The notes under the pieces: generated by a model
Databases searched by the model: none
What the model saw: the letters and a program-made list of their open reading frames with translations, nothing else
What the model was told of the DNA's origin: nothing
From: Mobula hypostoma
Taxonomy: Eukaryota
Assembly (NCBI RefSeq): GCF_963921235.1
Contig: NC_086110.1
Location: 434,001 to 498,000 of the forward strand
Length of the DNA stretch: 64,000 bases
Reading direction: 5' to 3'
Position numbers and translations under genes: made by a program
Part shown: piece after piece, positions 6,784 to 35,099 of the stretch
Numbering within the stretch: the first letter of the stretch is position 1
How the letters are laid out: every line of letters begins with the position of its first letter

Positions 6784-6789
6784 TAGATT

Positions 6790-9700: not shown

Positions 9701-10840
9701 GCAAGGCATTTGATAAGCTAACCCGTGCAAGGCTTATTGAGAAAGTAAGGAGGCATAGGATCCAAGGGGACATTGCTTTGTGGACCCAGAACCGGCTTAT
9801 CCACAGAAGGTAAAGAGTGGTTGTAGACGAATCATATTCTGCATGGAGGTCAGTCACCAGTGGAGTGCCTGAGGGATCTATCTGGGAACCCTACTCTTCG
9901 TAATTTTTATAGATGACCTGGATGAGGAATTGGAGGGATGTGTTAGTAAGTTTGCTGATGACACAAAGGTTGGGGCTGTTGTGGATAGTGTGGAGGGCTG
10001 TCAGAGGTTACAGCGGGACATTGATAGGATGCAAAACTGGGCTGAGAAGTGGCAGATGGAGTTCAACCCAGATGAACCCAGTGGTTCATTTTAGTAGGTC
10101 AAATACGATGGCAGAATACAGCATTAATGTAAAGACTCTTGGCAGTGTGCAGGATCAGAGGGATCTTGGGGTCCGAGACCATAGGACACTCAAAACCGCT
10201 GCGCAGGTTGACTCTGTGGTTAAGAAGGCATACGGTGCATTGGCCTCCATCAATCTTGTGATTGAGTTTAAGAGCCGAGAAGTAATTTTGCAGCTATATA
10301 GGACCCAAGTCAGAGACCACTTGGAGTACTGTGCTCAATTCTGGTCGCCTCACTACAGGAAAGACGTGGAAGCCATAGAAAGGGTGAAAAGGAGCATTAG
10401 GTGGATGTTGCCTGCATTGGGCAGCATGTCTTATGAGAATAGGTTGAGTGAACTCAGCCTTTTCTCCTTGGAGCGACGGAGGATGAGAGGTGACATGATC
10501 GAAGTGTATAAGATGATGAGAGGCATTGAGCGTGTGGATAGTCAGAGGCTTTTCCCCAGGGCTGAAATGGCTAGCACGAGAGGGTATAGTGTTAAGGTAG
10601 GAAGTAGGTACAGAGGAGCCGTCAGGGGTAAGTTTTTCTCGCAGAGAATGGTGATTGCGTGGAATGTGCTGCCGGCAGCCGAAACGATAGGATCTTTTAG
10701 GAGACTCCTGGATGGCTACATGGAGCTTAGGAAAATAAAGGACTCTGGGTAAAGCCTAATTAAGGGGATGTCCGCCAGAGTATTTTGGGCCGAAGGGCCT
10801 GTATTGTGCTGTATGTTTTCTATGGTTCTATGTTTCTGTG
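6790..10840 (+). mobile_element. CR1 LINE copy C, near full length but decayed
   Basis: ORF1 from ATG 6921 with zinc-finger-like C-x2-C...H-x-C-x2-C (FCTRCQV...HICTRC) and an esterase-like part (7360-7860); ORF2 endonuclease and RT pieces 7990-10752; TTCTATG-type tail at ~10815-10840. Confidence 0.9.
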
Positions 10841-11789: not shown

Positions 11790-14700
11790 CACATTGGGAG
11801 CTTCCCGCAAGACCACATCTGGTACAGCTCTGTGGGCCACACTCTCCGCTATGAGGAGGTACCTGGCGTCACTATCCCAGTCAGTTCCACATGTCCAGGA
11901 CTCCCTCTTCGCCGTTTGTAATGGACCTGTCTGTTATTTTATCCTCCGTCGGATGCCTGCATGTAATCGCCATTTCTTCGACTTTGTCACGTCCTGCAAG
12001 GCTCGTAAGATAGTCCGTCTGCAGAGCACAGAGCTTGCCGTCTCCAACGCTAGCAGGCGTGAACTGCGGACCGCGGTCCCCGACGACGATCTCTGCTGTT
12101 CTACCGACTCAGAGCATATTCAGGACCCGCACTCCAACACCATCCATGCGGGTTCCAGCGACTATGGACACCTTCAAAGCGAATGCGCAGCCTCCAACTA
12201 CGACACCAGCCTTGAACACCAGGCCGGGTCGTCATGTGCTGCTATTGCAACTCCCGTGTCCCCTCCTCCCACCACGGCTCTTCAATCCCATCTCGCTCAG
12301 ATCCCATCGTCAGCTCCTGGGCCCTCCGAGGCTTCACTTTCCTCTCACCGCAACCCTCCCCTCTCCACTGACACTACCAACCTCCCTCCCCACTCTGATC
12401 CCAGCTCTCATCCGTGCCAGGTCTTCACCATCCCCTCCGACCACCCAGCCTCTGAGTCAGAACGCTCCGTCCTCAGTAAGAGCCTCAGTTTTGTCCCCCG
12501 GCGCCCACACCTCAGCGAGTACGGAGTGAGCCATGACGCTAAACTCTTCTTCTGCCGGCTCCGTCTCCGAGCTTACTTCTTCGGCAAGGATGACCTCTTC
12601 TCCCTTCCTCAACCCTCCTCTGTAGCCTGCTCTGGAGCTTTTTATTGCTAACTGCCGACGGGACATCGACGGTCTCGACATCATCACACCTTGTTCCAAT
12701 TCCAACCTTACTCCTTCCGAACTCTCTGCTCTCCACTCCCTCCGGACCGATCCTAATCTTACTATAAAACACGCTGATAAGGGGTGTGCTGTTATAGTCT
12801 GGCGTACCGACTTCTACCTTGCCGAGGCACAGCGACAACTCAGTGATGCCTCCTCTTATTTACCCCTCGAACCCGACCCCACTAAGAAGCAACAGGGCAT
12901 TGTCTCCCACAGCATCACCAACCTTATCAGCTCTGTGGATCTCCCATCCACTGCCACCAACCTCATAATTCCCACATCCCGCACTTTCCATTTCTACTTC
13001 CTACGCAAGGTCCACAAACCTGTCTGTCCAGGTAGACCCATTGTCTCAGCTTGCTCCTGCCCCACCGAACTCATTTCTGCATACCTCGACACTGCTTTAC
13101 CCCCCCCCCCCCCCTTTTTCAATCCATCCCCACCTATGTTCGTGACACTTCTCATGCTCTGGAAATTTTCAATGATTTCATGTTCCCTGGCCAGCATCGT
13201 CTTATATTCACCACGGATGTCCAGTCCCTATATACCTCCATCCCCCACTAGGAAGGTCTCAAAACTCTCCGTTTCTTTTTGGATTCCAGACGCAACCAGT
13301 TCCCCTGTACCACCACTCTCCTCCGTCTAGCGGAATTGGTCCTTCCCCTTAATATTTTCTCCTTTGGCTCCTCCCACTTCCTCCAAAGTAAAGGTGTAGC
13401 CATGGACACCCGTATGCCTGCCTTTTTGTTGGCTTTGTGGAACAATCGATGTTTCAAGCCTATATTGGGATCTGTCCCCCACATTTCCTTCGCTACATTG
13501 ACGACTGCAATGACGCTGCTTCCTGTACGCATGCTGAGCTCGTTGACTTCATTAACTTTGCCTCCAAATTCCACCCTACCCTCAAATTTATCAGGTCCAT
13601 TTCCGACACCTCCCTCCCCTTCCTTGATATCTCTGCCTCTGTCTCTGGAGACAACTTGCCTGCTGATGTCTACTAAAATCCCACGGACTTTCACAGCTAC
13701 GTGGACTATTCCTCTTCCCACCGTGTTACCCGTAGAAACGCCATTTCCTTCTCTCAATTTCTCCGTCTCCACCTCATCTGCTCTCAGGATGAGGCTTTTC
13801 ATTCCAGGTCGAAGGAGATGTCTTTCTTTTATAAAGAAAGGGGCTTCCCTTCCTCCACCATCAACTCTGTCCTCAAACGCATTTCTCCCATTTCACGCAC
13901 ATCTTCTCTCACCCCATCCTCCAGCCACCCCACTAGGGATAGCGTTCCTTTTGTCCTCTCCTACCACCCGATCAGCCTCCGTGTCCAACAATAATTCTCC
14001 GTAACTTCCGCCACCTCCAACGCGATCCCACCACCAAGAACATCTTTCCCTCCCCCTCTCTCTGCTTTCCGCAGGGATCGCTCCCTAATGACTCCCTTCT
14101 CCATTTGTCCCCCCCTCCATACTTTCCCACCGAACTCTCTCCTGGCACTTATCCTTGTAAGCGGAACAAGTGCTACACCTGCCCTTACACTTCCTCCCTT
14201 ACCACCATTCAGGGCCCCAAACAGTCCTTCCAGGTGAGGCGACACTTCACCTGTGAGTCGGCTGGTGTGATATATTTTGTCCGGTGCTCCCGGTGTGGCC
14301 TTCTGTATATTGGTGAGACCCGATGCAGACTGGGAGACCGTTCCGCTGAATACCTACGCTGTGTTCGCCGGAGAAAGCAGGATCTATCAGTGCCCACTCA
14401 TTTCAATTCCACGTCCCATTCCCATTCCGATATGTCAATCCATGTCCTCCTCTACTGTCGACATGAAGCCATACTCAGGTTGAAGGAACAGCACCTTATA
14501 TTCCGTCTGGGTAGCCTCCAACCTGATGGCATGAACATTAATTTCTCTAACTTCCGTTAATGCCCCTCCTCCCCGTCTTATCCCAGACCTTCTTTTTATT
14601 TATTTATTTATTTATTTATTTATTCATTCATTCATTCATTCATTCATTCATTCATTCATTCATTCGTTCTTCTCTCTTTCCTTCTCACAATAACTCCTTG

Positions 14701-15055
14701 CCTCTTCTCCATCTTCCTTTGATGCTCCCCTCCCCCTTACTTTCTTCCAAGACCTTCCATCCTGTGATACTCCCCATTCTCCACACTTGTATCCCATTTA
14801 CCAATCAACTTTCCAGCTCTTAGCCTCATCTGTCCCCCTCCTGTCTTCTCCTATCATTTCGGATCTCCACCTCCCCCTCCCACTTTCAAAACTCTTACTA
14901 TCTATTTTTTCCGTTAGTCCTGACTAAGGGTCTCGACCCCAAATGTCGACTGTACTTCTTCCGATTGATGCTGCCTGGTCTGCTGCGTTCCACCAGCATT
15001 TTGTGTGTGTGTGTGTCGCTTGAAATTCCAGCGTCTATAGATTTTCTCGTGTCTA
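11790..15055 (+). mobile_element. Penelope-like element (RT plus GIY-YIG endonuclease), decayed
   Basis: KHADKG, GRPIVS, DVQSLYTSIPH and RYIDD RT motifs; C-terminal GVIYFVRCSRCGLLYIGET GIY-YIG motif (~14260); stop at 14560, followed by the pyrimidine-rich terminal region. Confidence 0.9.
14594..14665. repeat. Compound microsatellite (TTTA)n(TTCA)n
   Basis: Directly visible, inside the Penelope 3' region. Confidence 0.95.
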
Positions 15056-16915
15056 CGTTTTTAAATTCACCGCTGCGAAGACTCTTCCAGCGATACCTAC
15101 ACTGAAGAAGTTTAAATCTTCTCTTCGACGGGAGTTTAGTGAAACCCTCTCTCACTGTTCCTCATCTATAATTTCTTCGGCCCTTCAACTTTACGACCAT
15201 ACGCTCACCCACAGCCTCTATTATAGCCATATATCTTTCCTAGGAACGTGTCACCGCCGTCAACCGACTCCAGTTGGATTCAGGATTCGTTTTCGAGCCT
15301 CTCAACTTGGACCTTCTGAGGACCCCAGGTACTCACATTTAATTGACTCTGCCTTCCGGTTCTTCTCACGTTGAACTCTGGGGTTCATACTCTCCGCCAT
15401 GAGGAGGTGCCTGGCGTCCCTATCCCAGTCCCTTTCACATCACCGGAACTCCCACTTCGTCGTTTGTATTGGACCTGTACGTTATTTTATTCGCTGTCGG
15501 ATCCATGCTTGCATTGGCAATTTCTTCGACTTTGTCACGTCCTGCAATGATCGTAAAATCGTCCGTCTGCAGATCACAGAGCCCGCCGTCTCCAACGCTA
15601 GCAGGCGTGAACTTCGGACCGCGGCCCCTGCCGTCGATCTCGGCGGCTCTACCGACCCAGAGCATGTGCAGGCCCGCACTCCACCACCAGCCATGCGTGT
15701 TCCAACGACTATGGACATCTTCAAAGCCATTGCGCAGCCTCCAGCTGCAACTCCAGCCTCGAACTCCAGGCCGCGTCGTCACGTGCTGCTATTGTGACTC
15801 ACGTCTCCCCTCCCCCCCCCCCCCCCACCGCTCTGCAATCCCGTCTCGCTCAGATCCCATCGTCAGCTCCCTGGGCCCTCAAAGGCTTCACCTTCCTCTC
15901 ACCGCAACCCTCCCCTCTCCACTGACACTACCAACATCCCGCCCCCTCTGATCCAGCTCCCAAACTCTCATCCGTGCCGGGTCTTCACTATTCCCTCCGA
16001 CCTTCCAATCTCTGAGGCAGAGTGCTCTGTCCTCAGTAAGGGCCTCACCTTTGTTCTCCTGCGCCCACACCTCAGCGAGTTCTGCGTGCGCCATGACGCG
16101 GAACTCTTCTTCCGCAGGATCCGTCTCCGAGCCTACTTCTTCGGCAAGGACTCTGCTACCCCCACTGATGACACCTTCTCCCGTCCTCAACCCTCTACTT
16201 CTTCATGGACACACCGCTCTGAACTTCTGCCTGCTCTGGATCTCTTTATTGCTAACTGCCGACGGGACATCAACCGTCTCGACTTCACCACATCCTGCTC
16301 CAATCCCAACTTCACACCTTCCGAACGCTCTACTATCCACTCCCTTCGCACCAATCCCAGCCTTACCATAAAACCCGCTGATAAGGGGGGCGGCGCTGTA
16401 GTAGTCTGCCGTCCTGACATTTTCCTTGCCGAGGCAAAACGACAACTCAGTGATCCCTCTTATTATTTACCCCACGAACCTGACCTCACTAAGAAGCACC
16501 AGGCCATTGTCTCCCACACTAACACCAACCTTATCAGCTCTGCGGATCTCCCATCCACTGTCACTAACCTCATAGTCCCTGCACCCCGAGCTTCCCGTTT
16601 CTACCTCCAACCCAAGATACACAAACTTGCCTGTCCAGGTAGACCCATTGTTTCAGCTTGATCTTGCCCCACCGAACTCATTTCTGCATAGCTCCACTCT
16701 ATTTTATCCCCCCTTGTTTAATGTCTACCCGCCTATGTTCGCGACTCGTCTCATGGTCTGGATTTTTTTTCAATGATTTCAAGTTCCCTGGCTCCCATCG
16801 TCTTATTTTCACTATAGATGACCAGTCCCTATATACCTCCATCCTCCACCAGGAAGGTCTCAAAGCTCTACGCTTCTTTTTGGATTTCAGACCCAACCAA
16901 TTCCTCGCTACCACC
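15056..16915 (+). mobile_element. Second, tandem Penelope-like copy (5' half), truncated at an LTR
   Basis: Parallel to 11790-13300 (KPADKGGG, PKIHKLACPGRPIVSA, DDQSLYTSILH); ends abruptly where the LTR starts at 16916. Confidence 0.88.
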
Positions 16916-16991: not shown

Positions 16992-19900
16992 GTAAAGCAC
17001 AAACACCTTGTTATTAAGAGAGAAGACTTTGTTTGGAGTTTCTGCAAGGACACTGCCAGCTTCTGAGTTCCTACAGGGAGAGAAGGCAGGAGCTACTTGA
17101 TGGACAGCTGGTGTTCAGCTTGCTGAGATAAATACAAGGTCAGCTGGTTTTTAGGCACACATGGTTTTGGAAACTGGATGAGCTTTGCTGTGCCCACAGA
17201 AAGGTGGGTTTTTAGAGGATCGATCAGAAGAATCTATCAGTGGCTCTCGCAGTATGGAAAAGGTGTGACCGGTGGGATGTTTTAGTGTACCCAACCCTCG
17301 CCCGGGTTGATAACTCCACCACTGCAAACGGTCCCCTTGTTGTGGTCACATTCGGTGACTTCTAAAGGATTTCGGAGGACAACGGGAAGAATTGACGGCA
17401 TCGGCTTACTCGGACAACCACAACACCTCTCTCTCTCCATCACTACTCAACCCAATACCACAAACTGGACTGAACTTTACCCATCATCGTAAGACTGTAT
17501 CCATTTACCCCCAGGCTTGAGGAAGCTTGGTTTTATATATTTCCACACTTGTATATATATAATCATTGCGTAGTTACTAATAAATAGCGTTAGTTAACAG
17601 CAAAACCAGACTCCATGGTGTTTTCCATTTTCGCTGGTTCTTTAACCCATCACGGGGTACGTGACAAAATTGGGGGCTGGTCCTGGTTTTGAACAAATTG
17701 TGTGAGGACTTGTTTGAATTGATTGGGGAAAATGCTTCTGGATTTGTTTGTGTGGAAAAAAAGCAGGAGTGGAGGTTAGTGTTGAGAAGGTTCTATTGGA
17801 ACCAACCCCTGAAGCGTTGGAGAACGGTGCGAGGAATGTTCTGTTGGCAATCGCTCAGAAGTTAAGACTAAGAGGGACCACTAAAATGAGGAGATCTCAG
17901 ACGCAGACGGTATTATATAACTAACGGACAGTTTGAAGAGCAGATGTTATAGTTATGCGATGGAGGTAAACTTACTGAGGCTGAGATTCAGCTTCAGGTA
18001 GAGCCATTCAGGCTGGAGGCTGAGGATAGGAAAAGAGAGCATGAGTTGCAACTGAAGCAGCTCGAGGCCGCTGACGCAGAAAGTCAGAGAGAGAGTTCAA
18101 GAGGGAGATGTGGCAGCTGGGAGGCTCAGTGTTGGACTCTGCTGATTTTTACAGCTCGAAAGAGTTTATGTTGATTTAAGAATTTAAAAGTTGTGCTCCC
18201 GATTATGTAAGGGCTTACTAGATGAAGAGCATGCCGCCATCCTGCGGGGTCTACTAAGACAGCAAACGAGTTTGTTTTAAACCACCAGGTTCAGTTTACT
18301 CCGGATGAGAGTTTCTCAGAGAGTAGCTGGGAAGATCAAGGTAACCTTGAATTTGAAACTGGGACAAGTGATGATGGCCCAGGTTGTTGAAGTACCTGTG
18401 TGAACCTTGTGAAGAAGCTCAGTTCAGGTCTGAGGTGTCTGACTCGGTTGAAAGGAATGCAGTCCCTTTGTGTCAGATGGTCTTGGTTCAGTGAATAAGG
18501 GGTTATCCTTAGTACCAGTTGAAGTTGAGGATTCTCAGTCACTTGAATTAGACAGTGTTCTAAAAGTTAGAGATGAGATGAAAATTGTTGAGGTAAATGT
18601 TACTGAATATATTGAGAATAGTGTTGTTTCTGGACTTTTGAATGATGTACTTGTGAAGTTTGGATTGGTTTTGCGCCCTTTGGCCCTGCCTTCAGGACAA
18701 AGGCCTGCTAAAGACATGTGCCACTCTGTTGAATTTTCTATTAACACTTGAATGTAAACAACTTCAAAGTTATGTGGTTGCTTTTCACGATTGTAATGTA
18801 GAGAAAAAGATTGTTTTGGGTTTGAGAACTCATTTGAAGAAGTTACTATGGAGATAGATCGAGTTGAAGGTTGTAGAAATAAAATAAATGGATTGTTTGG
18901 GATTTTTCACAGTATACACATGGTTTCCGCAAGTCTGGTGATAGTGCTGAACTTAGAAAACATTGGGGGGAGATTGACACCTATTCAAGATGATGTTCAT
19001 CCAGCAGTTATGCTAACTAGCAATCTTGCTGCTGCTAATGACCCACACATGCAGACTGATGTTTACCCTGCTGGCGTAGTCACTCGAAACATGTTTGGAA
19101 AGTCTGCTGATACTCGTAATGATTTATCAGCGACTTTCTTACAGCCCCTATTCTAAAAGGACCTAGAAGATAGTAAAGCCGATGAGAGTAAGGTTGATGA
19201 GAAAGGTTTGTCCTTATCTAGGAAGGAATGTATAGAGGAACAGAATTCAGCTTCTGAAATTGACGCTTTAAAGGAGACAGCCTTCACAGAAGAGGAGGTT
19301 CAGTCAGAGTCAGTAGAATACTACCTTAAAGATAGTTTGTTAATGAGGAAGTGGAGACCACCTACTGTGCTTCAAGTGAGGATTGGACTATTGAACATCA
19401 GGTTGTGGGCCCGAAAGTTTACAGAGCTGAGATTTTAAACATGGCTCGTAGTATGCATTTAGATGGATATTTTGGAATGATAAAGACAGCGAATAGGATT
19501 ATGAAGGAATTCTACTAGCCTAATTTAAGAAAGGATGTTGTGAATTTTTGCAGGACTTGCCATACTTGCCAGGTTGTGGTGAAACCTAATCGGGTTATTC
19601 AAGTAGTACCACGTAAACCGTTACCTACTTTTGGTGAACTTTTTTTCTGGGATCATAGTGCGTTGTGTTGGCCCATTGCCGAAGACTGCAGCTGGTTATC
19701 ACTACTTGTTAACAATTATGTGTGCTGCGTCTAGGTTCCCTGAAGCCGTGCTTCTCAGAAACATCCAGGCCAAGACTGTGGTAAAAGCATTCATCAAGTT
19801 TTTCACACTGGTAGGTCTGCCCAAAGAAATTCAATCTGACCAGGGTAGTACCTTTACTTCGAGAACATTCCAGTGGATAGTTAGAGAACTGAGAGCTAAG

Positions 19901-21720
19901 CACATTGTGTCATCTGAATATCACCCACAGTCCAAGAGAGCCCTAAAGCGGTTCCACTCCACTCTTAAGACAATAACTAAAACATATTGTGTGGAAAATC
20001 GAAAAAAAAAAGCTGGGATGAGGTGGTTCCCCTACTCTTATTTGCTGTTAGAGACTCGATTACAATTCATTGGGGTGTAGTCCTTTTGAGCTTATTTTCG
20101 GTCACAGGCTCTGAGGACATTTGACCTTGCTCAGAGAAAAGTGGTCTGATCTGAAAGTAAGTGTCAGTGTGCTGGATTATGTTTTGGAACTCAGATAAAG
20201 GCTTAACAATGCTTGTGACCTTGCAAAGCAGATTTGCAAAACTCCCAAATTAAAATGAAATACGGGTTTGATAGGAAAGCGAGAGAAAAGGTGTTTCAGG
20301 TTGAAGGTAGGGTCTTGGTCTTGTTCCCCCTTTTGACCAACCCCCTCCAAGCGCAATTTCATGGGCCGTACCAGATAATTAAGAACATTGATTCTTTAAA
20401 TTATGTTACTAGAACTTATGACCGAAGGAAGGCTACTCAAGTCGTTGACGTAAACATGCTCAAGCCTTATCATGACACGGAAATATCACCTGTGAGTACT
20501 GTTATGAAAACAAATGAAGCTGTGGGGCCTGGTACCGAGATAACAGATAACTTTAATGTACCCAGTGCAGTCTCCACAAAGCTCGAAAACACTATTGTTT
20601 TGAAAGATATTAATAACAAAGTCCATCATTTGGTGCTTGCACAGCGAAAACAATTCGAAGGCTTAATTAGTAAGTATAAAGATTTATTCCATGACATTCC
20701 AAGACAGTGCACGGCTGCAGTGCATGACGTCATTGTAGGCTCAGCCGAGCCGATCAAACAGCATCCCTACAGAATGAACTTTGGAAAAAGTAGAATGGTT
20801 GAACAAGAAATTGGAATCAAGAAAGAACAAGGAAACAGAGTGGAGGACTGTATTGATAAAGTGGGAAAGGCTAAATACCTTACAAAGATTGACCTGTTAA
20901 AAGGATACTGGAGTGTTCCTTTGACAGAAAGGGCTAAAGAAATATCCTCATTTGTGAAAACCATCTGGACTGTATGAGTACAATGTTTTACCCTTTGGGA
21001 TAAAAAAATGCTCCAGGGATATTCCAAAAGATGGTGAATTAAGTAATTCAGGTTTCAAAAAATACAGGGGCTTATATTGATGATCTGGTTGCATGGAATG
21101 ACACGTGGGAAGAGCATATTGCGGCTGTAGAACAACTGTTTGAAAGGCTGTCCAATGCAAATCTTACCGTAAACCATGCTAAAAGTGAGTTTGAGCACAC
21201 CACTATTACTTATCTTAGCTACGTAGTAGGCCAGGGCCAACTGCCTCCTGTACAGGCCAAGGTTCATACTATTGCTGAGGTTCCCGTTCCGACGGGCAAG
21301 AACGCTTTTAGAATGTTTTAGGAATGGTTGGGCATTAGCGTAAGTTCTGTCAGAGCTTCGCAGGCATCTCTCTCCGCTTAACGAAACTTCGAGGGGAGAA
21401 TGAAAGCTTTGCAGGGAGTGGCCTTTGACAGGAGGCATTTGAAAACTATTTTGTGTTATCATCCTGTCCTCAAAGCACCCGATTTTAATAAACCATTCTC
21501 TACAGTGATAGACACTAGTGACGAATCTGCTGGTGCAGTATTGTTGGAAAAGGATGATAATGACATTGAACATCCAGTAGCTTATTTCTCAAAGAAATTT
21601 AATATGCACCAGAAAAAATACTCTACCGTTGAAAGGAGTTGCTATCACTTATTCTGGCTTTACAACATTTCTCGCCAGAGTTTCAAAGCCACAGAACTTT
21701 CTGTTATACTTGTGGCGACC
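16916..21720 (+). mobile_element. Gmr1-type Ty3/Gypsy LTR retrotransposon (order LTR-PBS-gag/pro-IN-RT-RNase H), 3' LTR missing
   Basis: LTR 16916-17666 (TGTGACG...GTGACA). PBS TGGGGGCTGGTCCTGG at 17671-17686 resembles the tRNA-Pro PBS. Integrase (CRTCHTCQ; IQSDQGS; YHPQS) at 19440-20110 lies before RT (KIDLLKGYW, YIDD) at 20700-21300 and RNase H (PVAYFSKK) at 21400-21650. Confidence 0.85.
16958..16989. repeat. (AG)n microsatellite inside the LTR
   Basis: Directly visible. Confidence 0.95.
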
Positions 21721-22965: not shown

Positions 22966-23456
22966 AAACATAGAAATCCCACAGCACAGTACAGGCCCTT
23001 CGGCCCTCAAAGCTGTGCAGAACATGTCCTTACCTTAGAACTACCTAGTCTTACCCATGACCCTTTATTTATTAAGCTCCATGTATTCATCCAGGAGTCT
23101 CTTAAAAGAACCAAAAAAGAGGAAAAAAAATTGAGCAAGTAACACCTTCGAGAAGAAAATCCCGTCCTGTATAATTAGCCATTTCGGACAGGATGTTCAC
23201 AACGAGAACACTGCTCATTAGAGAATGTAGCTACAGGAAAAAAACACATTCATATTTTTGCGCATTCTTCACAGATTCCCGAGTGACCAGTAACAACCCT
23301 TGATGTGCTTCGCTGTGCAGAGATGTAATTAATATGTGTGCAGATTTGAAGCCGGACACGCCCACTGGAACCAAACCTTTCTCGTAGCACTCCTCTCTCT
23401 GTTCATTTGTCACTTCGTTCATTCAACTGTTTCTTTCAGTTTTGTGCTGTGAGATA

Positions 23457-23502
23457 ATGAGACTCTTGCTGCCTTTGATCATCCTGAATGTCAGCGGCAC
23501 CG
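23457..23502 (+). CDS. Leader (signal peptide) exon of an IgSF V-C1 receptor gene
   Basis: ATG 23457, MRLLLPLIILNVSGT plus G, phase-1 donor G|gtatac. An upstream acceptor ttctttcag (23439) suggests a further 5'UTR exon. Confidence 0.7.
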
Positions 23503-23690
23503 GTATACTTCTCTCTCGCTACAATCTTACTTTATATTCAACTGATTAATATTTAATATTACATTTCATTTGTTATTTTCTATCAATGTAGCTGTATTTT
23601 TTTTTTGTTTTTCGTTGAACGCCAATTTCATATGATTTGCGTAATCGTCTGTGTATTTTTCGGACTAGATGTTTGATTTTGTGTTTAAAG

Positions 23691-24010
23691 CTTTCCCAGC
23701 AGCCAAAGGTACCTTGCGTTCACCTTGAGGCAAGATCCCGAGGTTACGGTGACGAGAGGTGACACGGCAAAACTTTACTGCATCTTTCCAATTTTGCCCC
23801 ATAAATACGTGAGAGTGCATTGGTGGAGAGACGGGGAAGACAGTTTCCTGGACGAGAGACTCGACAGAAGAATCTATTCATATTTCCTAAACCAGGGAGG
23901 TGCCATTTTACAGATTAATGCTGTGACAGCAGAGGACGCCGGGGTTTATTTCTGCCGGTTGACACATGCCACAGTTTCAAATGGGACAGGTACAAAGCTG
24001 ATGGTTTACG
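23691..24010 (+). CDS. VJ-type Ig V-set domain exon (NKp30/SIRP-like, germline-joined)
   Basis: AFTLRQDPEVTVTRGDTAKLYC...VHWWRDG...AILQINAVTAEDAGVYFCRLTHATVSNGTGTKLMVY: B-strand Cys, C-strand Trp, D-x-G-x-Y-x-C and J-type G-x-G-T-x-L-x-V in one exon; strong phase-1 donor G|gtgagt at 24010/24011. The 5' boundary is uncertain (see findings). Confidence 0.92.
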
Positions 24011-25793
24011 GTGAGTGCCAGAGGACCAGGCGAGATCTGTCTGTCCCATTCGCTCGCTCCCCTTGTGTAAAATGTATTGTGCTTTTTCTATCTAATGGAT
24101 TTGGGCGTTACTAGGAAAACCAACATTACTGTCACTGCCGAGCTGATTTAGTGATCCATGATTGTTAGAAGCATACTATGTAGCTAATGGGTAACTTCCT
24201 AAATTCTCAACCAACTATCTGGGAGTCAGAACTGATAGTGCTTGATCAGTAAATGCGGCATGCCTTTCCTACCCTGGATAGTAAAATGACTGCGGTCTGT
24301 GGCAGTATTAATCGTATTGATGAAATGCTAATGGGAGGCTGTTGTAATATCGAATGCGCACACTATAATCAACCTGTCGAAGTTGTTGAAAGAGGTTTTA
24401 TTTGTGGTGTCGAATATGCTCGCGCTCAGTGAGACTATTTATTAATTTTTTAAAGTGCATAGAATGACGAATCGTAGACGTGTCGTACAAAGACATTGTC
24501 CCAGCTGAATTTGATTTGCCTGATTTCGGTTTATACTCGCCCGAGCCTTCCCAGCAAGTTTCGGTACAATTTACTGGTTGTGGCACCAGCCTCTATGTGG
24601 GGCAAAAACGAACCCATAAAGTTTCTAAATTTCCGCCCTTACAAAGTGCCTTTTCTTTCTGGAATCACCTGCCACAGGAAAGAAAACGAGATTTTCTGAC
24701 CATCTGGACTATCTCAGCCTCACATAAATCTATAAGGCCAAGATTCTTTTTCCATCCAGACTTCTGATATCATCTCACAAGTACAGTGCTTCTTTCACTG
24801 TGTGTGTACATTTCTCCTGGACCAGCTTCATTGCTGCCACATATTTCTCTGAAGTGCATGCTTTGATCACACTCCTGTTTATTTTCCTGGAAAATGCCTG
24901 GACTTGAAAGACTGAATGATTGATAATGCAATGATGATCTATGAAATTTATTACATGGATCCCTCTTATTTTCAGAATCGGAAACGACGGTACGATCACA
25001 CATATAGAGTGATGATTATGGGCACAAAGTTACTTGAGTCTTTGCATCTCAAGCTCACATTCTGTGTGAACTATTGTAAATGGAGCTTAGCAATGACAAA
25101 TCCATGATGGGAATACAACTTGAAAGGGATTTGGACCTTTCACATAGTCTGAATAATTTCTGTGTCAGTATTTTTGGTTCGGTAAAAGGTTTTCGAATCG
25201 CAGAAACATTTTTTTTTCTCTCTCTTTTCTCTTTGATAAACAATTCTTCTTACTGAACCGTGTTCTTCATCTGGATTTATTAATCAATAAACCTTGTCCC
25301 CTGGTTAGGTACTCTAATTAACAATCAGTGAGAGTGCAATTTTCAAATTGACCTGCTGAACTATTATAAAGAAGTAAAGTTCCTTCAGTTGGGTCACCGA
25401 ATTATAATCGAAAACGGGGCAATGTAACTTTCAATTTAATGCTTTGAATCTGAACTTTTGTACATGAAGCTCAGCGTTTCATTCATTTTGTCTGTAGCTA
25501 CCTCTCTTTTAGTTCCGCAAGATCTAGAAATAGCAAGAGATGTACAAGTTGGCGTGACCCATGAAAACAAAGTATTCAACAATCAAATTTAAAAGAAAGG
25601 CAGTTGGGTTTGGAGGGAATGAATATCACAGAGAAAACAAGTTAAACATTTAAATAAAAAGTTCTAACTTCTCTGCAGAAGAAAACTGAAGGACAATTGT
25701 CATTCCATGAAGTTATTTTTTGATGCTGCAATGTAATTTGCTTCAAATTTGTTAAAAGCTTTGTGTTGCTAAAAAAAAACACTTTATTTCTAG

Positions 25794-26096
25794 ATCCTCC
25801 AACCCCCCTGCGTCTGATGGTTATGCTGCCTAAGAACGAGTCAGTCACCCTCGCTCTTATTTGTAACACCGCTGCGTTTTTCCCGCAAGGTCTGAACATA
25901 ACTTGGTACAAGAATTGCTCAGATATTATACCTGAAGTCCAGCCTATCAAAACAAAGACAACTGCGGGATTGTACGAGGCTTCAAGCTGCCTGACTGAGA
26001 CTGAGCCTGTGGAGGACGGGACAGTTTATACCTGCCAGGTTTCTCACATCGCTCTTCCAAACCCTGCTAACATCAGCTACATTTTCTACAATTCAG
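25794..26096 (+). CDS. Ig C1-set domain exon
   Basis: Acceptor ctttatttctag|AT and donor TCAG|gtaag, both phase 1, in frame with the V exon. DPPTPLRLMV...LICNTAAFFPQGLNITWYKN...YTCQVSHIALPNP carries the C1 signatures C-x4-F-[FY]-P, W and Y-x-C-x-V-x-H. Confidence 0.93.
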
Positions 26097-26749
26097 GTAA
26101 GATCAGTTATTAGCTCCGTGTATTTAGCATCTAAGCGGTTCACAATAAACTACGTTAAACATTTTGCACTCGTTTGGCTGTCCATACTTTATGTACGAAT
26201 ACTGTATGAGTTGATGATCTGCAATCTACTTGTACCTTTGTTGCGAAAATGAAAAGGGCAAGCTCCAAAAGGTATTAAGCTTAGAAATTTAAAAGAATGG
26301 AAACCCCATCACCAAGAATAATAATAACTGATAGGTAAATCTTGTTTAATAAGTTTTATAGGTGGCATCCGTCATTTATGAAAAAAATAGATATATAAGT
26401 CCACATAAGTCAGATACTGAGGACATAAGGAATGGGACCTCAATGTTTCATTGAATCCTGTCCTGTCTTTCCATATGACTGCATCTTATACGTCACTTTC
26501 CTGTCAAATTTTCTGCACTAATATAACGTTGCATGATTCTATCAATATCGGTGAAACTGAGCAATGTCTAAATTAAATATCAAAGCCAAAGTAGACGTTA
26601 TAGTGTTATGAAAATGCTACCTGCAGCAGCATCAGATACACAGCAATAATCAAAATCATATTAAATATAAATTGCAAGGTTATGGAAAAAGAAGCGCAAT
26701 CCTAATAAAAGGTGAAGTTTAGTGAACGCTCTCTCCATTATTTGCTTGC

Positions 26750-27350
26750 CCATTCGTCCCTCCCCATTAATCTACATTGGCGATACTAGTATTAAGCGGG
26801 AAACTGCTTTGTCGAGCACCTCTGTTCCATCCGCCAAAAGTGGAACTACCCGGTGGCCAAATATTTAAGTTCAATTCCCACTCCTATTCCTACATGTCGA
26901 TCCATTGCCTCTTGTGTCTGGATGAAGCGATATTCAGGGTGGAGTAGCAACGGTTTATATTCTGTTTGGGCAGCCTGCAGCCTAATTGCATGAATATCGA
27001 TTTCTCATTCCGCAAACTTTCTCCTTCTCTCCACTCTTTTTACATTCTGCAGTCTAGCTCATACGCCTTCTCACCTGCCTAGCACCTTCTTCTGGGTGCC
27101 CCCACCCCTTCCCTTCCTCCTGTGATCCGCTGTCCTCTACTATCAAATTCCTTCTTCTCCAGATCCGTATCTTTTTAAGCCAGCTGCCTATCCTCCTTCC
27201 CCTCCCCTATCTTTTTTTTTATTCTGCCCTCCCCACCTACCTTCCTTTTCTGTACCAAAGAAGGGTCTCGGCCTGAAACATCGACTGTTTATTCCTTTCC
27301 GCAGATACTGACTGACCTGTTGAGTTCCTCCGGCATTCTGTGTGTGTTGC
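26750..27350 (+). mobile_element. Old Penelope-like 3' fragment in an intron
   Basis: Degenerate match to the GIY-YIG end and terminal region (gggcagcctgcagcct...catgaatatcgatttctc; aagggtctcggcctgaaac). Confidence 0.65.
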
Positions 27351-27503
27351 TGTAGATTATCTCCTGTTTGGGAGCTACAGGAAGCTGAGTAGCAGCAGTA
27401 CCGAGTTTAAGAATAAGCACTTCTTTTCGATGAACCAGCTGTCAAAACCCCGATTAGTACAGATCAGGCAAACGCTGACCCCTTGATAATTTGCACCAAA
27501 CAG

Positions 27504-27601
27504 AACTCCTTTGGTCTCACCTTCTGTTCTCTGTTCTAAAAATTCTTATTTTATTGCGAACGCTGCATTCACGATCGCATGTCCCTCTGATGACAATGGA
27601 G
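27504..27601 (+). CDS. Candidate transmembrane exon 1 (intramembrane Lys)
   Basis: Acceptor ccaaacag|AA (phase 1) and strong donor GAG|gtaagt; reads ELLWSHLLFSVLKILILLRTLHSRSHVPLMTME. Confidence 0.6.
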
Positions 27602-29156
27602 GTAAGTTTTCTCTGTACCTGTGAATACAGGTATATTTGCATAGGGCAATAACCTCGACTGACTTTGACTTTGAATCTTCGGTGTGAAGGCAAATTAAAG
27701 GCGCGTGTGCGCCATCTTTGTGAATGCATCTAAGTATTGGGACGTGGGCAGATCATCTAACAGGTTAGCGCCCGAGAATTGTTAACAACATGGCAACATC
27801 TGCCCTTTGATTTTGAAATTGTGACGACAGGTTCGAGACAATGCACCACCCCTTAAAACGCACAGGGGGTATACCTACAAGCCCGCTAAGACGTTGTGAT
27901 TTAGGTTCGATGACATTGTCTCTTATTGGGATGCAAACGTTCCCTGAAACAAAGAAAAACAGAATCCTGACATAAGAATGAAACGCAGAAGATGGGGTTC
28001 CTTGTGTAACTGAGGTAGCTAAGACACCGTCACCGTTATTTACCTGCCTGTTCTAGTGGCCATACGTTATACAGTAGAACAAAAATCCGTAGTATCAGGG
28101 AGCAGCCACCAGCAGTATACGCACCAAAGTAATGCACTACTTAATCAGCTGTCACAACCCCGAGGCCTATCTAATGTCGCCTCTGGATACGCATGCTGTT
28201 CCAAAATATCACATAGTTAATGTAAGTTAACATTGCTTCTGACAAATTTGGATTGATTGATTTGAATTAGTAACGTAATTCTGCGAGTGATTCTACAGTC
28301 TGCGAGAATGACTGTGAAGCTGTTACAATGTACAACAACTCCAATCCTAATTCATTTTCTCTACGTAGACAAATCTTATCAATTATATTCTGTGATGATT
28401 TTAAGGACGCACTGATCTCCCACAACGTACAGTGCTTTAGAGAGAAGATAAAAACAACTAACAAGTCATTAGATCAGCGGAGTGCTGGATTACAAATATT
28501 TAAAAACAGCAACGAGGTCCTGGATGAAAAATATAAGATAAAACGAAGGAATGGTGGCTTTGGACAACGTGAAACTCAGTCGGAACGGACATCCTTTTTC
28601 ACTGCTCGGTCACGGCGAATAAATCGACCTTAGGGTATCCTATCGTTATTTTCAGATAAATTTCAAAGTACCCAGTGGATTTGGAAGAGCTCGAGGCCAG
28701 GCGCCAGGCAGATAACTTTGTCCTCAATGTAAACTTGACAAGGACGATGATTACCCGCTTCAAGAAAACTCGCACCCACTTTACACCCGCGGTACAGCAG
28801 GGAAAACTACGAACAGTTTTAAACTCCTGGGCGTGCACAAGTCACACAACGTCTGATAGTCTCAGAGTACATCCTACACAAAACAGGGAATCTCGGCTAC
28901 GTTTCGACTTTCTGAACAGGCTGAAGAAAACAGGTCTATGCGATATAATACTCACAGCCTTCTACAGAGATTCACTAGAGAGCATCCTAACACACTGAAC
29001 CATGGGGAAACAGCTTTGTATGTTTATCTCGCCCGTACAGTCATAATCTAATATTATGCAAAATACTGTGAAAATGATGAAATATTTGACTGAGTTACAA
29101 TTTAAATGCCGTATGCAATTTAAAGCTCGTCACTAAATTTATTATTAACGTTACAG

Positions 29157-29255
29157 ATTCAGGCAACTACAATTCATTTGCTGATCAGAATTTCGGTTAC
29201 GTAGCAAGAGGAGTAATGTTCTTCCTGATTCTCACCTTCATTGTGACAGGCAGAG
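29157..29255 (+). CDS. Candidate transmembrane exon 2 (Arg-Gly at the start of the TM segment)
   Basis: Acceptor gttacag|AT, donor AGAG|gtaaga, 99 nt, phase 1-1. Reads DSGNYNSFADQNFGYVARGVMFFLILTFIVTGR; the other two frames contain stops. Confidence 0.68.
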
Positions 29256-29733: not shown

Positions 29734-29801
29734 AAATTGCAGATATTAAGAGCTGCACAGTTTCAATCCTCTCCGACGGAGTGCAATGACTTCGGTCTTA
29801 G
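29734..29801 (+). CDS. Candidate cytoplasmic linker exon (phase 0 to 2)
   Basis: Acceptor gattccag, donor TTAG|gtacct (moderate); KLQILRAAQFQSSPTECNDFGL. Supported mainly by phase fit between 27601 and 33858. Confidence 0.35.
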
Positions 29802-32800
29802 GTACCTTTCTCCATTTTGCAATGGCCTCCCTCTCCATTGAGCGCATCATTCCTGCATCACATCTTTCTAGACCTGTCAATTTAAAACCACATATGAAAC
29901 CCCCTGTCATGCTGCTAAACTCCAGAGAAAGCTCATAAACCAGAACTTAATCTCTTGAACTTCCACTGAACGCCTTCAAAAGTTAGAAGAACTTTGAGCA
30001 GGAAATAGTCCAAGACTGCCCACGGTATTGAAATTGCGGTCAGATAAAGGTGTACCATTGCAGAGAGATCTGCCTAGCAGCTTATTGGACTATTCCTGAG
30101 AGGAAGATAAGCACTCCATCTCCCTCTTACGTTCCAAGTTTTGGCTGCGTGCTGACATTCATCAACAAGATGCTGGAAATCCAAGCAACACACACAAAGT
30201 GCTGGAGGAACTCAACAGGCCAAGCAATTTTTTGTGTGAGTTGCCAACATTCAGCTCTGCCTTTCCTATTGACTTAGTATTCACAAAATTACTTCCCTTG
30301 TTTTTAGCCCCAAAGTTAATCTATTTGGATTTTTTCGTCATCTGCCAGATATCTCTACATTCTCTCAGTATGGAGTTTCTTGGTTTCGTTCTCAAGGCTT
30401 ACTTTCTCACACAACATTATGCTGTTCTCAAATATTGGATGGATTCCATTTAATCCTCTTATTGAATTGATCATCATATATGCTGAATAACTGCAATCCC
30501 AGCATGTTCACTGTGGTTTCTCATTAGGCACCGTTTTCCATTTGGGGCAAAAAGCTCTGTTCCTTTTTGGCCAACTCATTCTCGATCGTGGTTCACGTTT
30601 TAATAAATCTCTAATACCACAAGTTTTAATTTTGCACCAAGCTCTGTTGTGGGATGTTATTGAAATGTTTCGGAATTGTAATTACACGAAATAATTAATT
30701 CCCTGAATGATATTTGCCAGCTATACTGTCAAAACATGACTTACTATAAATTTTAAACATAACTTTGCTTTAATAGATCATGCTTTTACCTCTCCCCATC
30801 AAGTTCTCCAAGGCTACCTTTGCAACATTTTTCCACCCACTTATCTACAATTCCCTGCTTTCATTGCACTTTATAGTTTACATATCGGGCTTATATGTTG
30901 GGTCTTGCAGTCCTGCGAAACTGTTCTGCATTCCAGCGACTCCATAAAATTCTGGAAAGTAACCACAATTATTTTGGGGCCAATTTCTTACGTATTCTGG
31001 GGTGTAGGCCATTAGGCCCTCAGCTTTTGAGTTGTTATTTTCTACTTACGCCTTCACTGCCTTTATAATAATTCTGCTGAATTCTAAACTGCCCCCAGTT
31101 GTCAAACTTTCCGGGCCTTCCCACGTTTTTGTATTACTTCTTCTTTGTCCTAATGCTATCTATACTTCAGAAGCTGTGTACAGACCTCATCATATCGGGG
31201 AAACCAACCTCCTCTCCATGGACTTTGTCTACGCTTCCCGATGTCTTGTACAATAGCCAAATGAACAGGGATAATTTTCTCTTCTGCTGCAACTCCGCCC
31301 GTCACCATACCAAAGTCTGGAAGCATGTAACAGCAGATTCCTGGAGAGTTTGTCTCCCGCTCTTAAAAGACAATTTAAAGGTCCTTTAGGTGGACTCTGG
31401 ACCACACAGTCTAGCTCGTTATGGCATCCTGTTGTTTGCCCGCACTGTGCGACAGTTTATTCTGCAATTGCTTCTGTTTTTAACTTTTACTGATATGTAT
31501 GGTTGGCAAATTAAGTTTTATTTCCACAGTAGTTCGGTACATGTGACAATAATAGATAAAGTTACTAACTTATCAATTTAATAATGAAGATCTATAATTG
31601 AGCCAAACAAGTTATATTGTTCCATTTGCTCTGGACAGCAAAGGATAACTGATGCTTTCTTGACATTCTGCTTCGCTTTTTGAAGTGTCATCCAATCTAT
31701 CAGAGCCACTGTACTCGTACTTTTATGGCTCCAGACTCTGGTAATTATTCTCAAAATTAATTCTTTCACTCTCCAACTTGATAAATATACTATTCCTTCA
31801 GCAGGGAATCCCGCACAACAGAACCTCTTAATCTATTCCAGTCGCATTTTGCGATTCATGCACAAACACTCCGAAGTCGCCTTGCTAAACAGCGTGCTGT
31901 AAAATATCCACATATAATTAATGTCTGATCTTCACTTTGTTTCTTTAAAAGCTAACGACCTTGACCAAAGTTGTGCATCATCTGCCAGATTTTTGCCCGC
32001 TCTCTGAAATGTAGCCTTCACCGTCTAACATAGCGGTGCTAGCTTAATGGGCAGGGATAGCAGACAAGTGATAGTATTTCATATGTAAAGTGAAGAAATG
32101 GATTGGAGATTAGCACTGGCAATTCGACTACAGCCCGGCCTATTTGTGGTTGTAATTTAATCATTCTGTGTGAGTGATGTATTTTAGAAAGCTAGGTAAC
32201 AGTAGTGCCCATAGTGTAAATGTTAGGACAGTCGTGCATGTTAATGAAAAGAGTGATTCGAAGGGTGCCTTTCCATAATTGCCTGATAAATGATTGGATG
32301 GTGAAGGCATATAAAATGCTTGCTTTCATAGATCACCTATATAAGAGTATGCAGTTTTGGAGAACGCTAGTTAGACAAAGTTTAGAACATTGTTTGCAGT
32401 TTTTTGAATGTTTCTCGTCGACACACTATAGAAATGTGTGGATTGTATTGAAAATGGTGCATAGAAAATTCACCAAAGTATTGCCTAGATTAGAATACCA
32501 TAGTTGTGTGGAGAGAATGAATTGGTGGGGTTTGTTTACTCTGGAGCTTGAGGCTAAGGAAAAGCCTAATAGAACTATATAAAAGTAGGAGAGGCATATA
32601 AAGCACATATGATAAGCACATTTCCCATATAACAAGGGTATCAATGCAACAGGGAATAACTTGAAGGGGAATTTTAATGCCCATGTGAGAGAGTGTGCGA
32701 TCCTCGTCGTTTCATCAACTATGACAAGGGGAATATCAGCAGCGATGGGACGTTTTCACTTTGTTACGATACGAAGTACGAGTTATATTATGAATTTTTA

Positions 32801-32989
32801 AAAGTGCACTAGAGAATGGGATTGTAAATAATGCATATATTGGCACATAAGAGGTCAAATCAATTTCTGATCAGTCAGGGGTGTAGACCGTATAATGAAG
32901 AATGAGAGCCATATTACTAATTCGCTTTATTAATTAGAAAGAGATAATTACAGAAATCCGAATTTCGAAATTATTTGTACCGATAATGG

Positions 32990-33772
32990 TTGACGGGACT
33001 GAGTGACAGACGCACCTCAGGGATGTGTACTTAGCCCACTGATCTATTCTATTCTACATCCATGACTGTGTGGCTAGGCACAGTTGAAATGACATATATA
33101 AATTGCTGATGATACAACCATTGTTAGCTGAATATCAGATGGAGACGAAAAGGCGCACAGGAGCGATAGATGCCAGATGTGGTGTCGCAGAAACAAAATT
33201 GCACTCATTGTCAGTAACATAAATGAACTGATTCTGGACACTGGTAATTTTTTACAGATATACCGTGGACAGCAGTCTAACTGGCTGCATTACCACCTCG
33301 TATGGGGGAGGGGGCACTTCACAGAATCGAAGTAACCTGTAGTGAGTTGTAAAATTAGGCAGCTCCATCATGGGCACTAGACTCCGTAGTACACAGGTCA
33401 TCTTAAAGTTTCGGTACATTAAAAAGGAGCATACATTATTAAAGTCCCTTCTCACCCAGGAGATGCCCTCTTCTTATTGTTACCGTCAGGAAGGGAGTAC
33501 AGACGCCTGAAGACACACACTCAAAGATTTAGCAACAGGTTCTTCTCTTCCGCCACCCGATTTCTGAATGGACATTGAACCCATGAAAACTACATCACTA
33601 CTTTTTTTATTTCTATTTTTTTTTACACCGCTTGTTTAATTTAAATATATAAGATATATACTCTTTATGCAGTATACTTTCTTTCTGTCTATTACTATGC
33701 ATTCTATTGCTGCGGCTAAATTAATAAATGTCATGACATATGCAGGCAATATGAAACCTGATTCTGATTCTG
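32990..33772 (+). mobile_element. Decayed L2/Rex-Babar-group LINE 3' fragment
   Basis: RT-like GAPQGCVLSPL and ADDTT; ends in an (ATTCTG)n tail at ~33757-33772. Confidence 0.65.
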
Positions 33773-33857
33773 ACAGGTAGTGCGCTCATGGTGCCCGTGT
33801 AAATACACAAGCTTGAAAGGAGAACAGTAGACATAATACGCTGAATTTGTTTGATAG

Positions 33858-33999
33858 GGTATTACTCTACTCGGCAATTCGATTTAAAACCGAAAAGTAT
33901 AATATTGTAAAAACAGCCTATAGCAATCTTCGAATAAGCCAGGAAGATGCAAGAAAAATAAAATTTATTCAATTAGGGAAGGTAATTCTCATAAGATGA
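33858..33999 (+). CDS. Candidate cytoplasmic tail exon with three tyrosine motifs
   Basis: Acceptor tttgtttgatag (phase 2); VLLYSAIRFKTEKYNIVKTAYSNLRISQEDARKIKFIQLGK, then either a donor AAG|gtaatt at 33981 or a stop at 33997-33999. Confidence 0.5.
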
Positions 34000-35099
34000 A
34001 GCAGGGATTGAAAAAGAGGCGTGAAATACTTCAGGACCTGAGTGCTGGGAGAAGGAGGACCAAGAGACATAGATGTTTCAGTGGTGATAGAGATAGGAGT
34101 GTGGTATACAGTTGAAACATAAACGCAGAAAAAAAATGGAAATAAATTCTCCTGGTTACAATTGACGGACAATTGGCATGCAGCCTGAAAGTGAAACAAA
34201 AATGACTGCCCTGTGTATCACTCCTCTTTTACTTGTCTCGGAACTAATTAAGAAAAATATTGATGCGTACAGCTACCATCTTCATAAAGCATCGGGTAAA
34301 ATGTTTAAATAACCCAAGTGATCAATACATTTTCTTTGTTATTCTCGATCACCCATCTTCAATTATTACAGGATACCCGTAGAAGCAGTTTTGCTCTTTG
34401 GTTGTTTCACGAAAGGAAAAGCAAGTTCGGAATTATAACGGGCTTCTCATTGCTATCGGCGTTTTGTTTGTTGCTATGATGATTTTTTTTGAGATGTTGT
34501 CGGATATTTAGTTTTAAAAGATATCCATTTTATTGATGGAAATATAATAACAGAATTCTAATAATTTTCAGCTTACGCTAGCCGGAGGAGATCAAAAGCG
34601 ACATGAATTGAAAGAAAAGAAAGCAAATTGAAAGAAAGCAATTGAACTGCCGTGGTGTGATATACCCTAACGCCCAGATTCTGGGCCATTGCAGCCCGGA
34701 GATCTGATATAAATTGGGCACCGACATCATACGTCACTCTGAAATTGGCTTGGGCTAAGATGTCTGCTGAAGTCAGACATGCTGAACAGAAAACAATATA
34801 TCCCCAGGTTTGTAGAGCATGGCAGTTAATGCAGGAACGAACTAATCAAATATGAAAACGTTTTAAGTAATTATTTCTACTGCATTTATGGTTTTGTAGA
34901 TATTCGCAAATAAAACGACATTATGTTTAAGAAGAACTGTAATAAATGACTTATTGCAATCCAAACACTGGACACAAAAGCGCGGTCACAATCCTTTACG
35001 TAATTATTATCTTCACGTCAGACCAGCCTCTTACAGTGCACTCAGTGTCGGTGGCTGTGAATTATGTAGGTTTCCATCAATTACATTATTGTACACAAC

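Follow-up and report, generated by a model that had tools for sequence, protein, structure and literature searches.

The 64,000-nucleotide stretch of Mobula hypostoma DNA analyzed here (assembly GCF_963921235.1, contig NC_086110.1, positions 434,001 to 498,000 of the forward strand; hereafter the window) carries a gene in which a leader exon is followed by an immunoglobulin (Ig) V-set exon and a C1-set exon. A preliminary description, made without database searches, had placed this V-C1 gene at 23457-26096 (window coordinates, as throughout). The three exons exist where they were placed and are joined to one another in RNA contigs at GT..AG borders; however, the gene does not end at 26096, since two further exons, at 29157-29255 and from 34572 onward, are joined on in the same contigs, and an Arg-bearing transmembrane segment and a short tail had been overlooked. 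The locus is a real, transcribed, five-exon type I membrane receptor gene with a span of ~11.5 kb rather than 2.6 kb. The RNA evidence consists of near-identical contigs in three runs (X1, X2 and X3) of one organism, which are labelled 'RNA?' with their type off record. The exons are listed below, with a slash marking a joint between the last base of one exon and the first base of the next.

23457-23502, plus strand: exon 1, with the ATG at 23457, the coding part of the signal peptide or leader (MRLLLPLIILNVSGT) and one further nucleotide (phase 1), from translation and the RNA joint 23502/23691
23691-24010, plus strand: exon 2, V-set domain with the germline-joined J strand GTGTKLMV; 3' end in phase 1
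25794-26096, plus strand: exon 3, C1-set domain (LICNT...W...YTCQVSH), both ends in phase 1; RNA joint 24010/25794 in runs X1 and X3
29157-29255, plus strand: exon 4, stalk and transmembrane segment FGYVARGVMFFLILTFIVTGR, ends in phase 1; RNA contigs run from 26096 to 29157
34572-34916, plus strand: exon 5, 12-residue tail (R)AYASRRRSKAT, TGA at 34604-34606, then 3' untranslated region (UTR); joint 29255/34572 in X1 and X2

The order of the exons is given by a 1001-nt contig of X2, in which the leader, the V exon, a short form of the C1 exon, exon 4 and exon 5 follow in series, and by a 652-nt contig of X1 that repeats the last three of these. Contigs laid on the window show GT..AG borders at the joints 23502/23691, 24010/25794 and 24010/25890; exon 1 ends at 23502 and is followed by GT, and the 5' UTR lies upstream of it. 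The V exon is covered by RNA contigs over 23690-24009 with zero mismatches or gaps, and contig sequence past 26096 maps uniquely to 29157. At the other end of the transcript an AATAAA stands at 34909-34914 and the contigs stop at 34916, and the true 3' end may lie tens of bases beyond.

Both extracellular domains score above the curated Pfam cut-offs, the V-set domain with E 1.3e-9 and 38.6 bits (cut-off 26) and the C1-set domain with E 5.1e-10 and 40 bits (cut-off 21), and family alignments show the hallmark and invariant Ig residues of V and C1 to be all intact. An AlphaFold model of the V domain of this gene reaches a pLDDT (predicted local distance difference test) of 93.5. The 3' end of the V exon and both ends of the C1 exon are in phase 1 and mutually in frame upon translation, as had been proposed, and the J-type strand was likewise correctly located inside the V exon, the 3' end of which reads ...YFCRLTHATVSNGTGTKLMVY and has the J-type G strand built into it. 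Exon 4 translates as DSGNYNSFADQNFGYVARGVMFFLILTFIVTGR, with an Arg codon (AGA, 29207-29209) near the outer end of the transmembrane segment. In the C1 domain, the motif YKNCS (25908-25916) has a Cys in this copy where close relatives have the Gly of an NITWYKNGS motif, which gives the domain an extra unpaired cysteine.

Two other paths through the 3' half of the gene were considered and rejected. A Lys-bearing hydrophobic segment at 27504-27610 (ELLWSHLLFSVLKILILL...) has AG/GT borders in phase 1 and could have served as a second, Lys-type transmembrane exon; RNA contigs join 26096/29157 directly, and no family protein matches the segment by tblastn. Similarly, 29734-33999 was considered as a tail-exon path with tyrosines resembling immunoreceptor tyrosine-based inhibitory, activation or switch motifs (ITIM, ITAM and ITSM, respectively), and contigs of two runs join 29255/34572 directly.

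The V-C intron supports a non-rearranging VJ-C1 gene, with neither a recombination signal sequence (RSS) nor a used J segment. A scan of 23400-26200 on both strands for RSS-like pairs (a CAC-anchored heptamer with at least 6 of 7 matches and a nonamer with at least 6 of 9, at a spacing of 12 or 23 ± 1) returned 0 heptamer/nonamer pairs, where shuffled sequences average 0.27, in agreement with the preliminary description. The stretch GCGTSLYV at 24576-24599, within this intron, was rejected as a J segment because it has neither an RSS under the same scan rules nor a splice joint, and it is probably a chance resemblance.

A second acceptor is used inside the C1 exon.

25888-25890, plus strand: cryptic acceptor, AG at 25888-25889 with the exon then starting at 25890; joint 24010/25890 in X1 and X2

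The cryptic AG follows pyrimidine-rich codons for AAFFPQ, and its use drops 96 nt (32 codons) in frame, removing C1 strands A-B and the first Cys. Contig depths of 6.9 (X1) and 21.8 (X2) for the joint 24010/25890, against 4.4 (X1) and 3.1 (X3) for the full-length joint, indicate that use of the cryptic acceptor roughly equals or exceeds that of the normal one. The resulting short C1 form is also annotated in RefSeq for the paralogue in Mobula birostris, as isoform X2 (P0001). Half a C1 domain is unlikely to fold.

A frameshift between the leader and the V domain

How would this mRNA be translated? The preliminary description had treated the copy as an intact gene, and this does not hold, since the leader is frameshifted relative to V and a stop falls at codon 28. 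The leader exon contributes 46 coding nucleotides and ends in phase 1, whereas the V-domain frame starts one base, not two, past the acceptor 23690/23691 and needs phase 2 at 23691, which leaves the ATG out of frame with V. The spliced mRNA read from the ATG encodes 27 residues, MRLLLPLIILNVSGTAFPAAKGTLRSP, and then stops. The other frame, from V through C1 and the transmembrane segment to the stop after the tail, stays open over 251 codons and has neither a start codon nor a signal peptide.

23712-23719, plus strand: inferred site of a 1-nt loss, with AKG upstream in the ATG frame and FTLRQDPEV downstream in the +2 frame
23726-23728, plus strand: premature TGA in the ATG frame (codon 28), from translation of the spliced mRNA

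The nature of the lesion is suggested by P0154, a 325-residue protein of Mobula birostris whose leader is identical to that of this gene at 15 of 15 residues and then continues with AKGNSTFTLRQDPEV... P0154 reads uninterrupted through AKGNSTFTLRQ where this gene reads AKGTL(R)/FTLRQ, and a tblastn alignment of P0154 to the spliced mRNA puts its residues 1-25 and 22-302 in different frames. Because the eight bases at 23712-23719 (ACCTTGCG) stand in the place of three P0154 codons, we infer that one base was lost here, between the AKG and FTLRQ codons, which would correspond to the region from signal-peptide cleavage to strand A.

An assembly error was considered as the source of the frameshift and rejected as unlikely, because the X1 and X2 contigs that span the site match the genome without a gap, with no indel reported, and because the site is no homopolymer. 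The only acceptor that would restore the frame lies at 23734/23735 and would give ...SGT-DPEVTV, and no use of it is seen in the RNA contigs. Read in phase 2, the leader exon lacks an ATG and meets a stop at 23450.

A cartilaginous-fish receptor family and the relic of an inhibitory tail

The available comparisons support membership of this gene in an old, poorly characterised V-C1 receptor family of sharks, rays and chimaeras whose tails are either inhibitory or short. Searched exhaustively by HMMER, the V domain has its best match in P0001/P0154 of M. birostris and further V-C1 matches in Heptranchias, Heterodontus, Chiloscyllium, Scyliorhinus, Mustelus, Cetorhinus, Carcharodon, Hemiscyllium, Hemitrygon, Hypanus, Amblyraja, Mobula hypostoma itself and the chimaera Callorhinchus, and homologue and family-profile searches added members from Pristis, Rhincodon and Leucoraja. 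The preliminary description had anticipated such a family and is borne out on this point; the find is not unique, given the many paralogues in this genome and in RefSeq. Names of the members in RefSeq and UniProt are inconsistent and include SIRP-alpha-like, SIRP-gamma-like, NCR3 ligand 1-like (NCR3LG1-like), tapasin-related-like, Ig lambda-1 light chain-like, T-cell receptor (TCR) beta-like and uncharacterized; examples are Mobula birostris XP_072135201 (with an isoform X1), Heptranchias XP_067853506, Callorhinchus A0A4W3GFD2 and a Heterodontus 'Ig lambda-1 light chain-like' protein. The family is thus already machine-annotated in RefSeq, and this locus adds one more member. No description of this V-C1 membrane receptor family was found in the literature, although key papers were outside reach and a prior description is possible.

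Members share the motifs HWW(R/K)xGE, DAGVYYC, NGTGTxLxV, PPTPL, NxTWYKNG, GLYEVSS and TVYTCQVSH, and in alignments this gene has the family motifs and keeps all invariant columns. The exon plan is also shared, with leader, VJ, C1, stalk/transmembrane and tail exons at phase-1 junctions. Some members have long tails with ITIM/ITSM-type tyrosines, and others have short tails with an Arg at the outer transmembrane edge (P0091, P0112, P0136, P0158 and P0079 among the short-tailed relatives). This copy is set apart by the frameshift after the leader, by an Arg-bearing transmembrane segment and by a stop-truncated tail where P0154 carries an ITIM and an ITSM, and it does not have the intact signal-peptide-to-stop frame of the family.

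A maximum-likelihood tree of 31 ectodomains places the gene as sister to P0154 (100/99), and the pair falls within a larger clade, likewise supported at 100/99, that takes in skates, sharks and a chimaera; the subfamily therefore predates the holocephalan-elasmobranch split. Word-indexed searches with the whole protein, the C1 region and the family profile reached cartilaginous-fish relatives and one CD22-like fish protein, and none of the three returned SIRP, NKp30, PRARP, Ig light-chain (IgL) or TCR sequences. Searches by tblastn with the V and C1 domains found no paralogue elsewhere in the window, and an annotated protein for this copy was not found.

The 3' UTR holds a trace of the ancestry of the tail.

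34727-34807, plus strand: relic ITIM (SYVTL) and ITSM (TIYPQV), in the 3' UTR, in the coding frame and behind three stops, from translation of the frame and tblastn

When the last exon is read beyond its stop, three in-frame stops are followed by ...APTSYVTLKLAWAKMSAEVRHAEQKTIYPQV. This region matches the tail of P0154 by tblastn at 59% identity (E 3e-4), and the C-terminal part of P0154 reads ...DDQKLTYVTLNMARAKTSTIVRDSEQNTIYAQ..., with the ITIM LTYVTL and the ITSM TIYAQT. Because ITIM and ITSM relics sit behind the stops, this copy derives from an inhibitory-type gene.

Identity to P0154 is uneven along the gene, at 96% for V, 90% for C1, 52% for the stalk and transmembrane exon and 59% for the tail relic; the value for the 33-residue stalk and transmembrane exon is that of a global alignment, and the tblastn alignment gives 43%. 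For comparison, P0154 and its Hypanus counterpart P0155 are 79% identical in the transmembrane segment and 85% in the tail. On the maximum-likelihood tree, the ectodomain branch since the split from P0154 measures 0.012 for this gene and 0.052 for P0154. The short ectodomain branch and the retention of invariant Ig positions make the frameshift look recent. As judged from these alignments, the mosaic of a matched V/C1 part and a diverged transmembrane segment and tail is of the kind expected of paired inhibitory/activating receptors, and it may have arisen by homogenisation of the 5' half with an inhibitory paralogue or by fast divergence of the 3' half after a switch of function, either of which is common in such receptors.

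State and origin of this copy

What, then, is this copy? We hypothesize that it is a recently frameshifted and still transcribed activating-type member of the family, probably now a pseudogene. The family would consist of germline-encoded type I membrane receptors with one V domain, carrying a joined J strand, and one C1 domain, and this copy would be an activating-type or truncated version of them, its tail cut to 12 residues by stops. It would descend from an inhibitory-type gene whose ITIM and ITSM have come to lie in the 3' UTR, and the Arg near the outer face would dock an ITAM adaptor that bears an Asp, for example FcR-gamma, CD3-zeta or DAP12. Such docking is usual among receptors of this type, and the expectation is modelled on NKp30, SIRP-beta, KIR and similar receptors. 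Loss of one base after the leader would then have made translation from the only ATG end after 27 codons, and the mRNA should be a target of nonsense-mediated decay.

Several points weigh against this interpretation. The exact missing base is deduced from the protein of a paralogue and not from orthologous DNA. Moreover, the frameshift is known from one assembly and the RNA runs are perhaps from the same animal, so that it could be one allele rather than fixed, and RNA contigs drop rare variants, which leaves room for an unbroken allele or for a minor splice form that rescues the frame. Adaptor pairing through the Arg is drawn from other receptor families only, and the residue could be neutral in a decaying copy. 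The M. birostris proteins yielded no orthologue of this copy in either an intact or a broken state.

The alternative that survives best, though it is unlikely, is a working activating receptor in which the frameshift is an allele of the sequenced animal or is bypassed, either by a minor splice form that uses 23734/23735 to encode MRLLLPLIILNVSGT-DPEVTV... or by an unseen first exon. The gene is transcribed and spliced, its 251-codon V-to-stop frame is open with every Ig hallmark residue kept, its ectodomain branch is very short, and one in-frame acceptor is present, all of which would be consistent with a functional product. However, the sole leader-V joint seen, 23502/23691, is out of frame, no indel variant appears in the three RNA runs, the rescue acceptor has no RNA support and would cost the V domain the beginning of strand A, and the leader read in phase 2 offers a stop in place of an ATG.

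Next in order comes the possibility, which we consider improbable, that the copy is a decaying duplicate of an inhibitory gene and was never activating, in which case neutral damage would account for the tail stops, the Arg, the extra C1 Cys and the frameshift alike. The three stops that interrupt the frame of the tail exon together with the frameshift, the odd Cys at a mostly Gly position (YKNCS versus YKNGS) and the failure to find an annotated protein of the copy or of an orthologue are in keeping with decay. Nevertheless, V and C1 have changed less here than in the intact paralogue (0.012 versus 0.052), whereas drift of the entire gene over the time suggested by the 40-50% divergence of its transmembrane segment and tail should have left more change in them. 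Moreover, intact members of the family in several species also combine an outer-edge Arg with a short tail. A germline-joined Ig light-chain gene, or another true antigen-receptor chain gene, is scarcely credible: solved Ig lambda light chains are the best matches of the P0154 V-C1 model among known structures (21-28% identity over ~210 columns) and the V exon contains a J-like GxGTxLxV strand, but transmembrane and cytoplasmic exons are spliced on, family tails carry ITIM/ITSM, no RSS was found, the gene is set apart from IgL by its V framework (HWWRDGE) and by the family tree, and a whole-protein fold search puts SIRP-alpha first.

If the frameshifted activating-type reading that we favor is correct, the locus would be a clear example of an activating-type receptor carved from an inhibitory one, with a readable ITIM/ITSM, a matched ectodomain and a diverged transmembrane segment and tail. 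The value of this single locus is limited, as it is very probably disabled by the frameshift and belongs to a family that RefSeq has annotated by machine. The family itself, large in sharks, rays and chimaeras, would be new material for comparative immunology, above all with a V like that of NKp30, a C1 like that of Ig and paired signalling like that of SIRP.

No other cellular gene was recognised in the window, the remainder of which is transposon and satellite sequence. Within the introns and flanks of the gene, the stretches 27137-27530, 30085-30281, 33434-33630 and 23000-23196 reach RNA-contig depths of thousands to tens of thousands and probably represent expressed interspersed repeats that occur in many transcripts. 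Retroelement fragments at 19607-20974, 40998-41726 and 61420-61950 include an integrase core, an integrase C-terminal/SH3 domain, RNase H and reverse transcriptase. Long blocks at 1-10000, 12000-16000 and 44000-50800 show strong GC skew, with extremes of +0.39 and -0.67, and reach 67% G+C, and three overlapping open frames of ~2000 codons at 44.5-50.9 kb are typical of a tandem repeat array.

Comparison with known receptors

Interest in germline-joined VJ-C1 genes comes from the search for relatives of the gene which the RAG transposon split, giving rise to antibodies and T-cell receptors. Where does this gene stand among them? The comparisons modestly favor a composite in which the V domain is nearest NKp30, by small margins, the C1 domain is nearest Ig constant domains and the overall design is nearest SIRP. 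A fold search of Swiss-Prot with the V domain alone ranked NCR3/NKp30 of macaque, rat and human at positions 1, 3, 4 and 5 (27-29% identity, template-modelling scores of 0.82-0.85, E 4e-8 to 1e-7), followed by CD79B, CD8-beta, TCR-gamma and Ig kappa/lambda V regions at E 7e-8 to 1e-6. Xenopus NCR3 was the only match from outside the cartilaginous fishes among the HMMER matches of less than 520 residues that were looked up by name, and hhalign aligned the family V profile to it with a probability of 98.7% and 36% identity. The NKp30-like character that the preliminary description had seen in the V domain is therefore retained in part: the NCR3 ranks and the Xenopus match speak for it, but the lead over Ig and TCR V regions is only about ten-fold in E-value. 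A protein-language-model search with V alone returned only generic antigen-receptor, PD-1 and TIGIT V neighbors.

The best scores of the C1 domain were to Ig constant domains (C-lambda and C-mu), UrIg2, SIRP, tapasin-related protein and B7H6. For the whole protein, the AlphaFold model of P0154, with pLDDT above 90 in its Ig domains, matched SIRP-alpha of four mammals best among Swiss-Prot folds (E 9e-17 to 2e-15), then B7-H3, B7H6 and butyrophilins, and the protein-language-model neighbors were V-C1 clusters, the nearest named ones being those of SIRP-alpha. Profile searches of the PDB with the V and C1 alignments returned mostly multi-domain proteins and antibodies and did not discriminate between families.

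The likeness to NKp30/NCR3 extends to the Arg at the outer transmembrane edge and the germline-joined J-like strand; in contrast, NKp30 is without a C1 domain and Xenopus NCR3 is V-V, whereas the C1-set exon of this gene is spliced directly after V. One conceivable, if doubtful, explanation is that the V-C1 family is a sister or ancestral form of NKp30 in which the C1 domain was retained and that tetrapods lost it. On that view NKp30 would have started out as a VJ-C1 chain resembling an antigen receptor, of which inhibitory and activating forms were paired, and this locus would record the passage from an inhibitory gene to an Arg-transmembrane, short-tailed form in which the ITIM/ITSM relics are still legible.

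SIRP resembles this family in having an N-terminal V domain with a J-like strand followed by C1-set domains, and also in a functional sense that does not amount to orthology, in that ITIM-bearing members are paired with members of near-identical ectodomain that have a short tail and a charged transmembrane segment. The two differ in that SIRP is V-C1-C1, whereas the RNA contigs show a single C1 exon here, and identity is ~16% over the aligned length. SIRP-beta uses Lys and DAP12. The charged residue of this gene is Arg in place of that Lys.

Among cartilaginous fishes, shark UrIg and UrIg2 are non-rearranging VJ-C genes (PMC12227049, PMC10751288), and UrIg2 has a V-C1-C2-C3 structure and forms disulfide-linked dimers resembling IgG Fc (PMC12227049). 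The gene shares with them a non-rearranging VJ exon followed by C1, and the UrIg2 chain 9dmx is among the better PDB matches of the C1 profile; it differs in its single C domain, against three or more in UrIg, and in its transmembrane segment and descent from an inhibitory-type gene. Joined VJ exons are known from SIRP, CD8, CD79, NITR, NKp30 and PRARP (PMC11599192), and the non-rearranging PRARP genes of bony vertebrates, discussed as relics of an antigen-receptor precursor (PMC10751288, PMC11599192), have a joined VJ as well. The preliminary description had allowed that the gene might prove to lie within germline-joined IgL clusters or to have no spliced V-C1 transcripts. Neither is the case, as spliced contigs exist and include transmembrane and tail exons. 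Germline-joined Ig light chains are secreted without a membrane anchor, and no other V or C segment lies in the window. The gene departs from the defining architecture of each of its nearest counterparts, NKp30, SIRP, UrIg and IgL.

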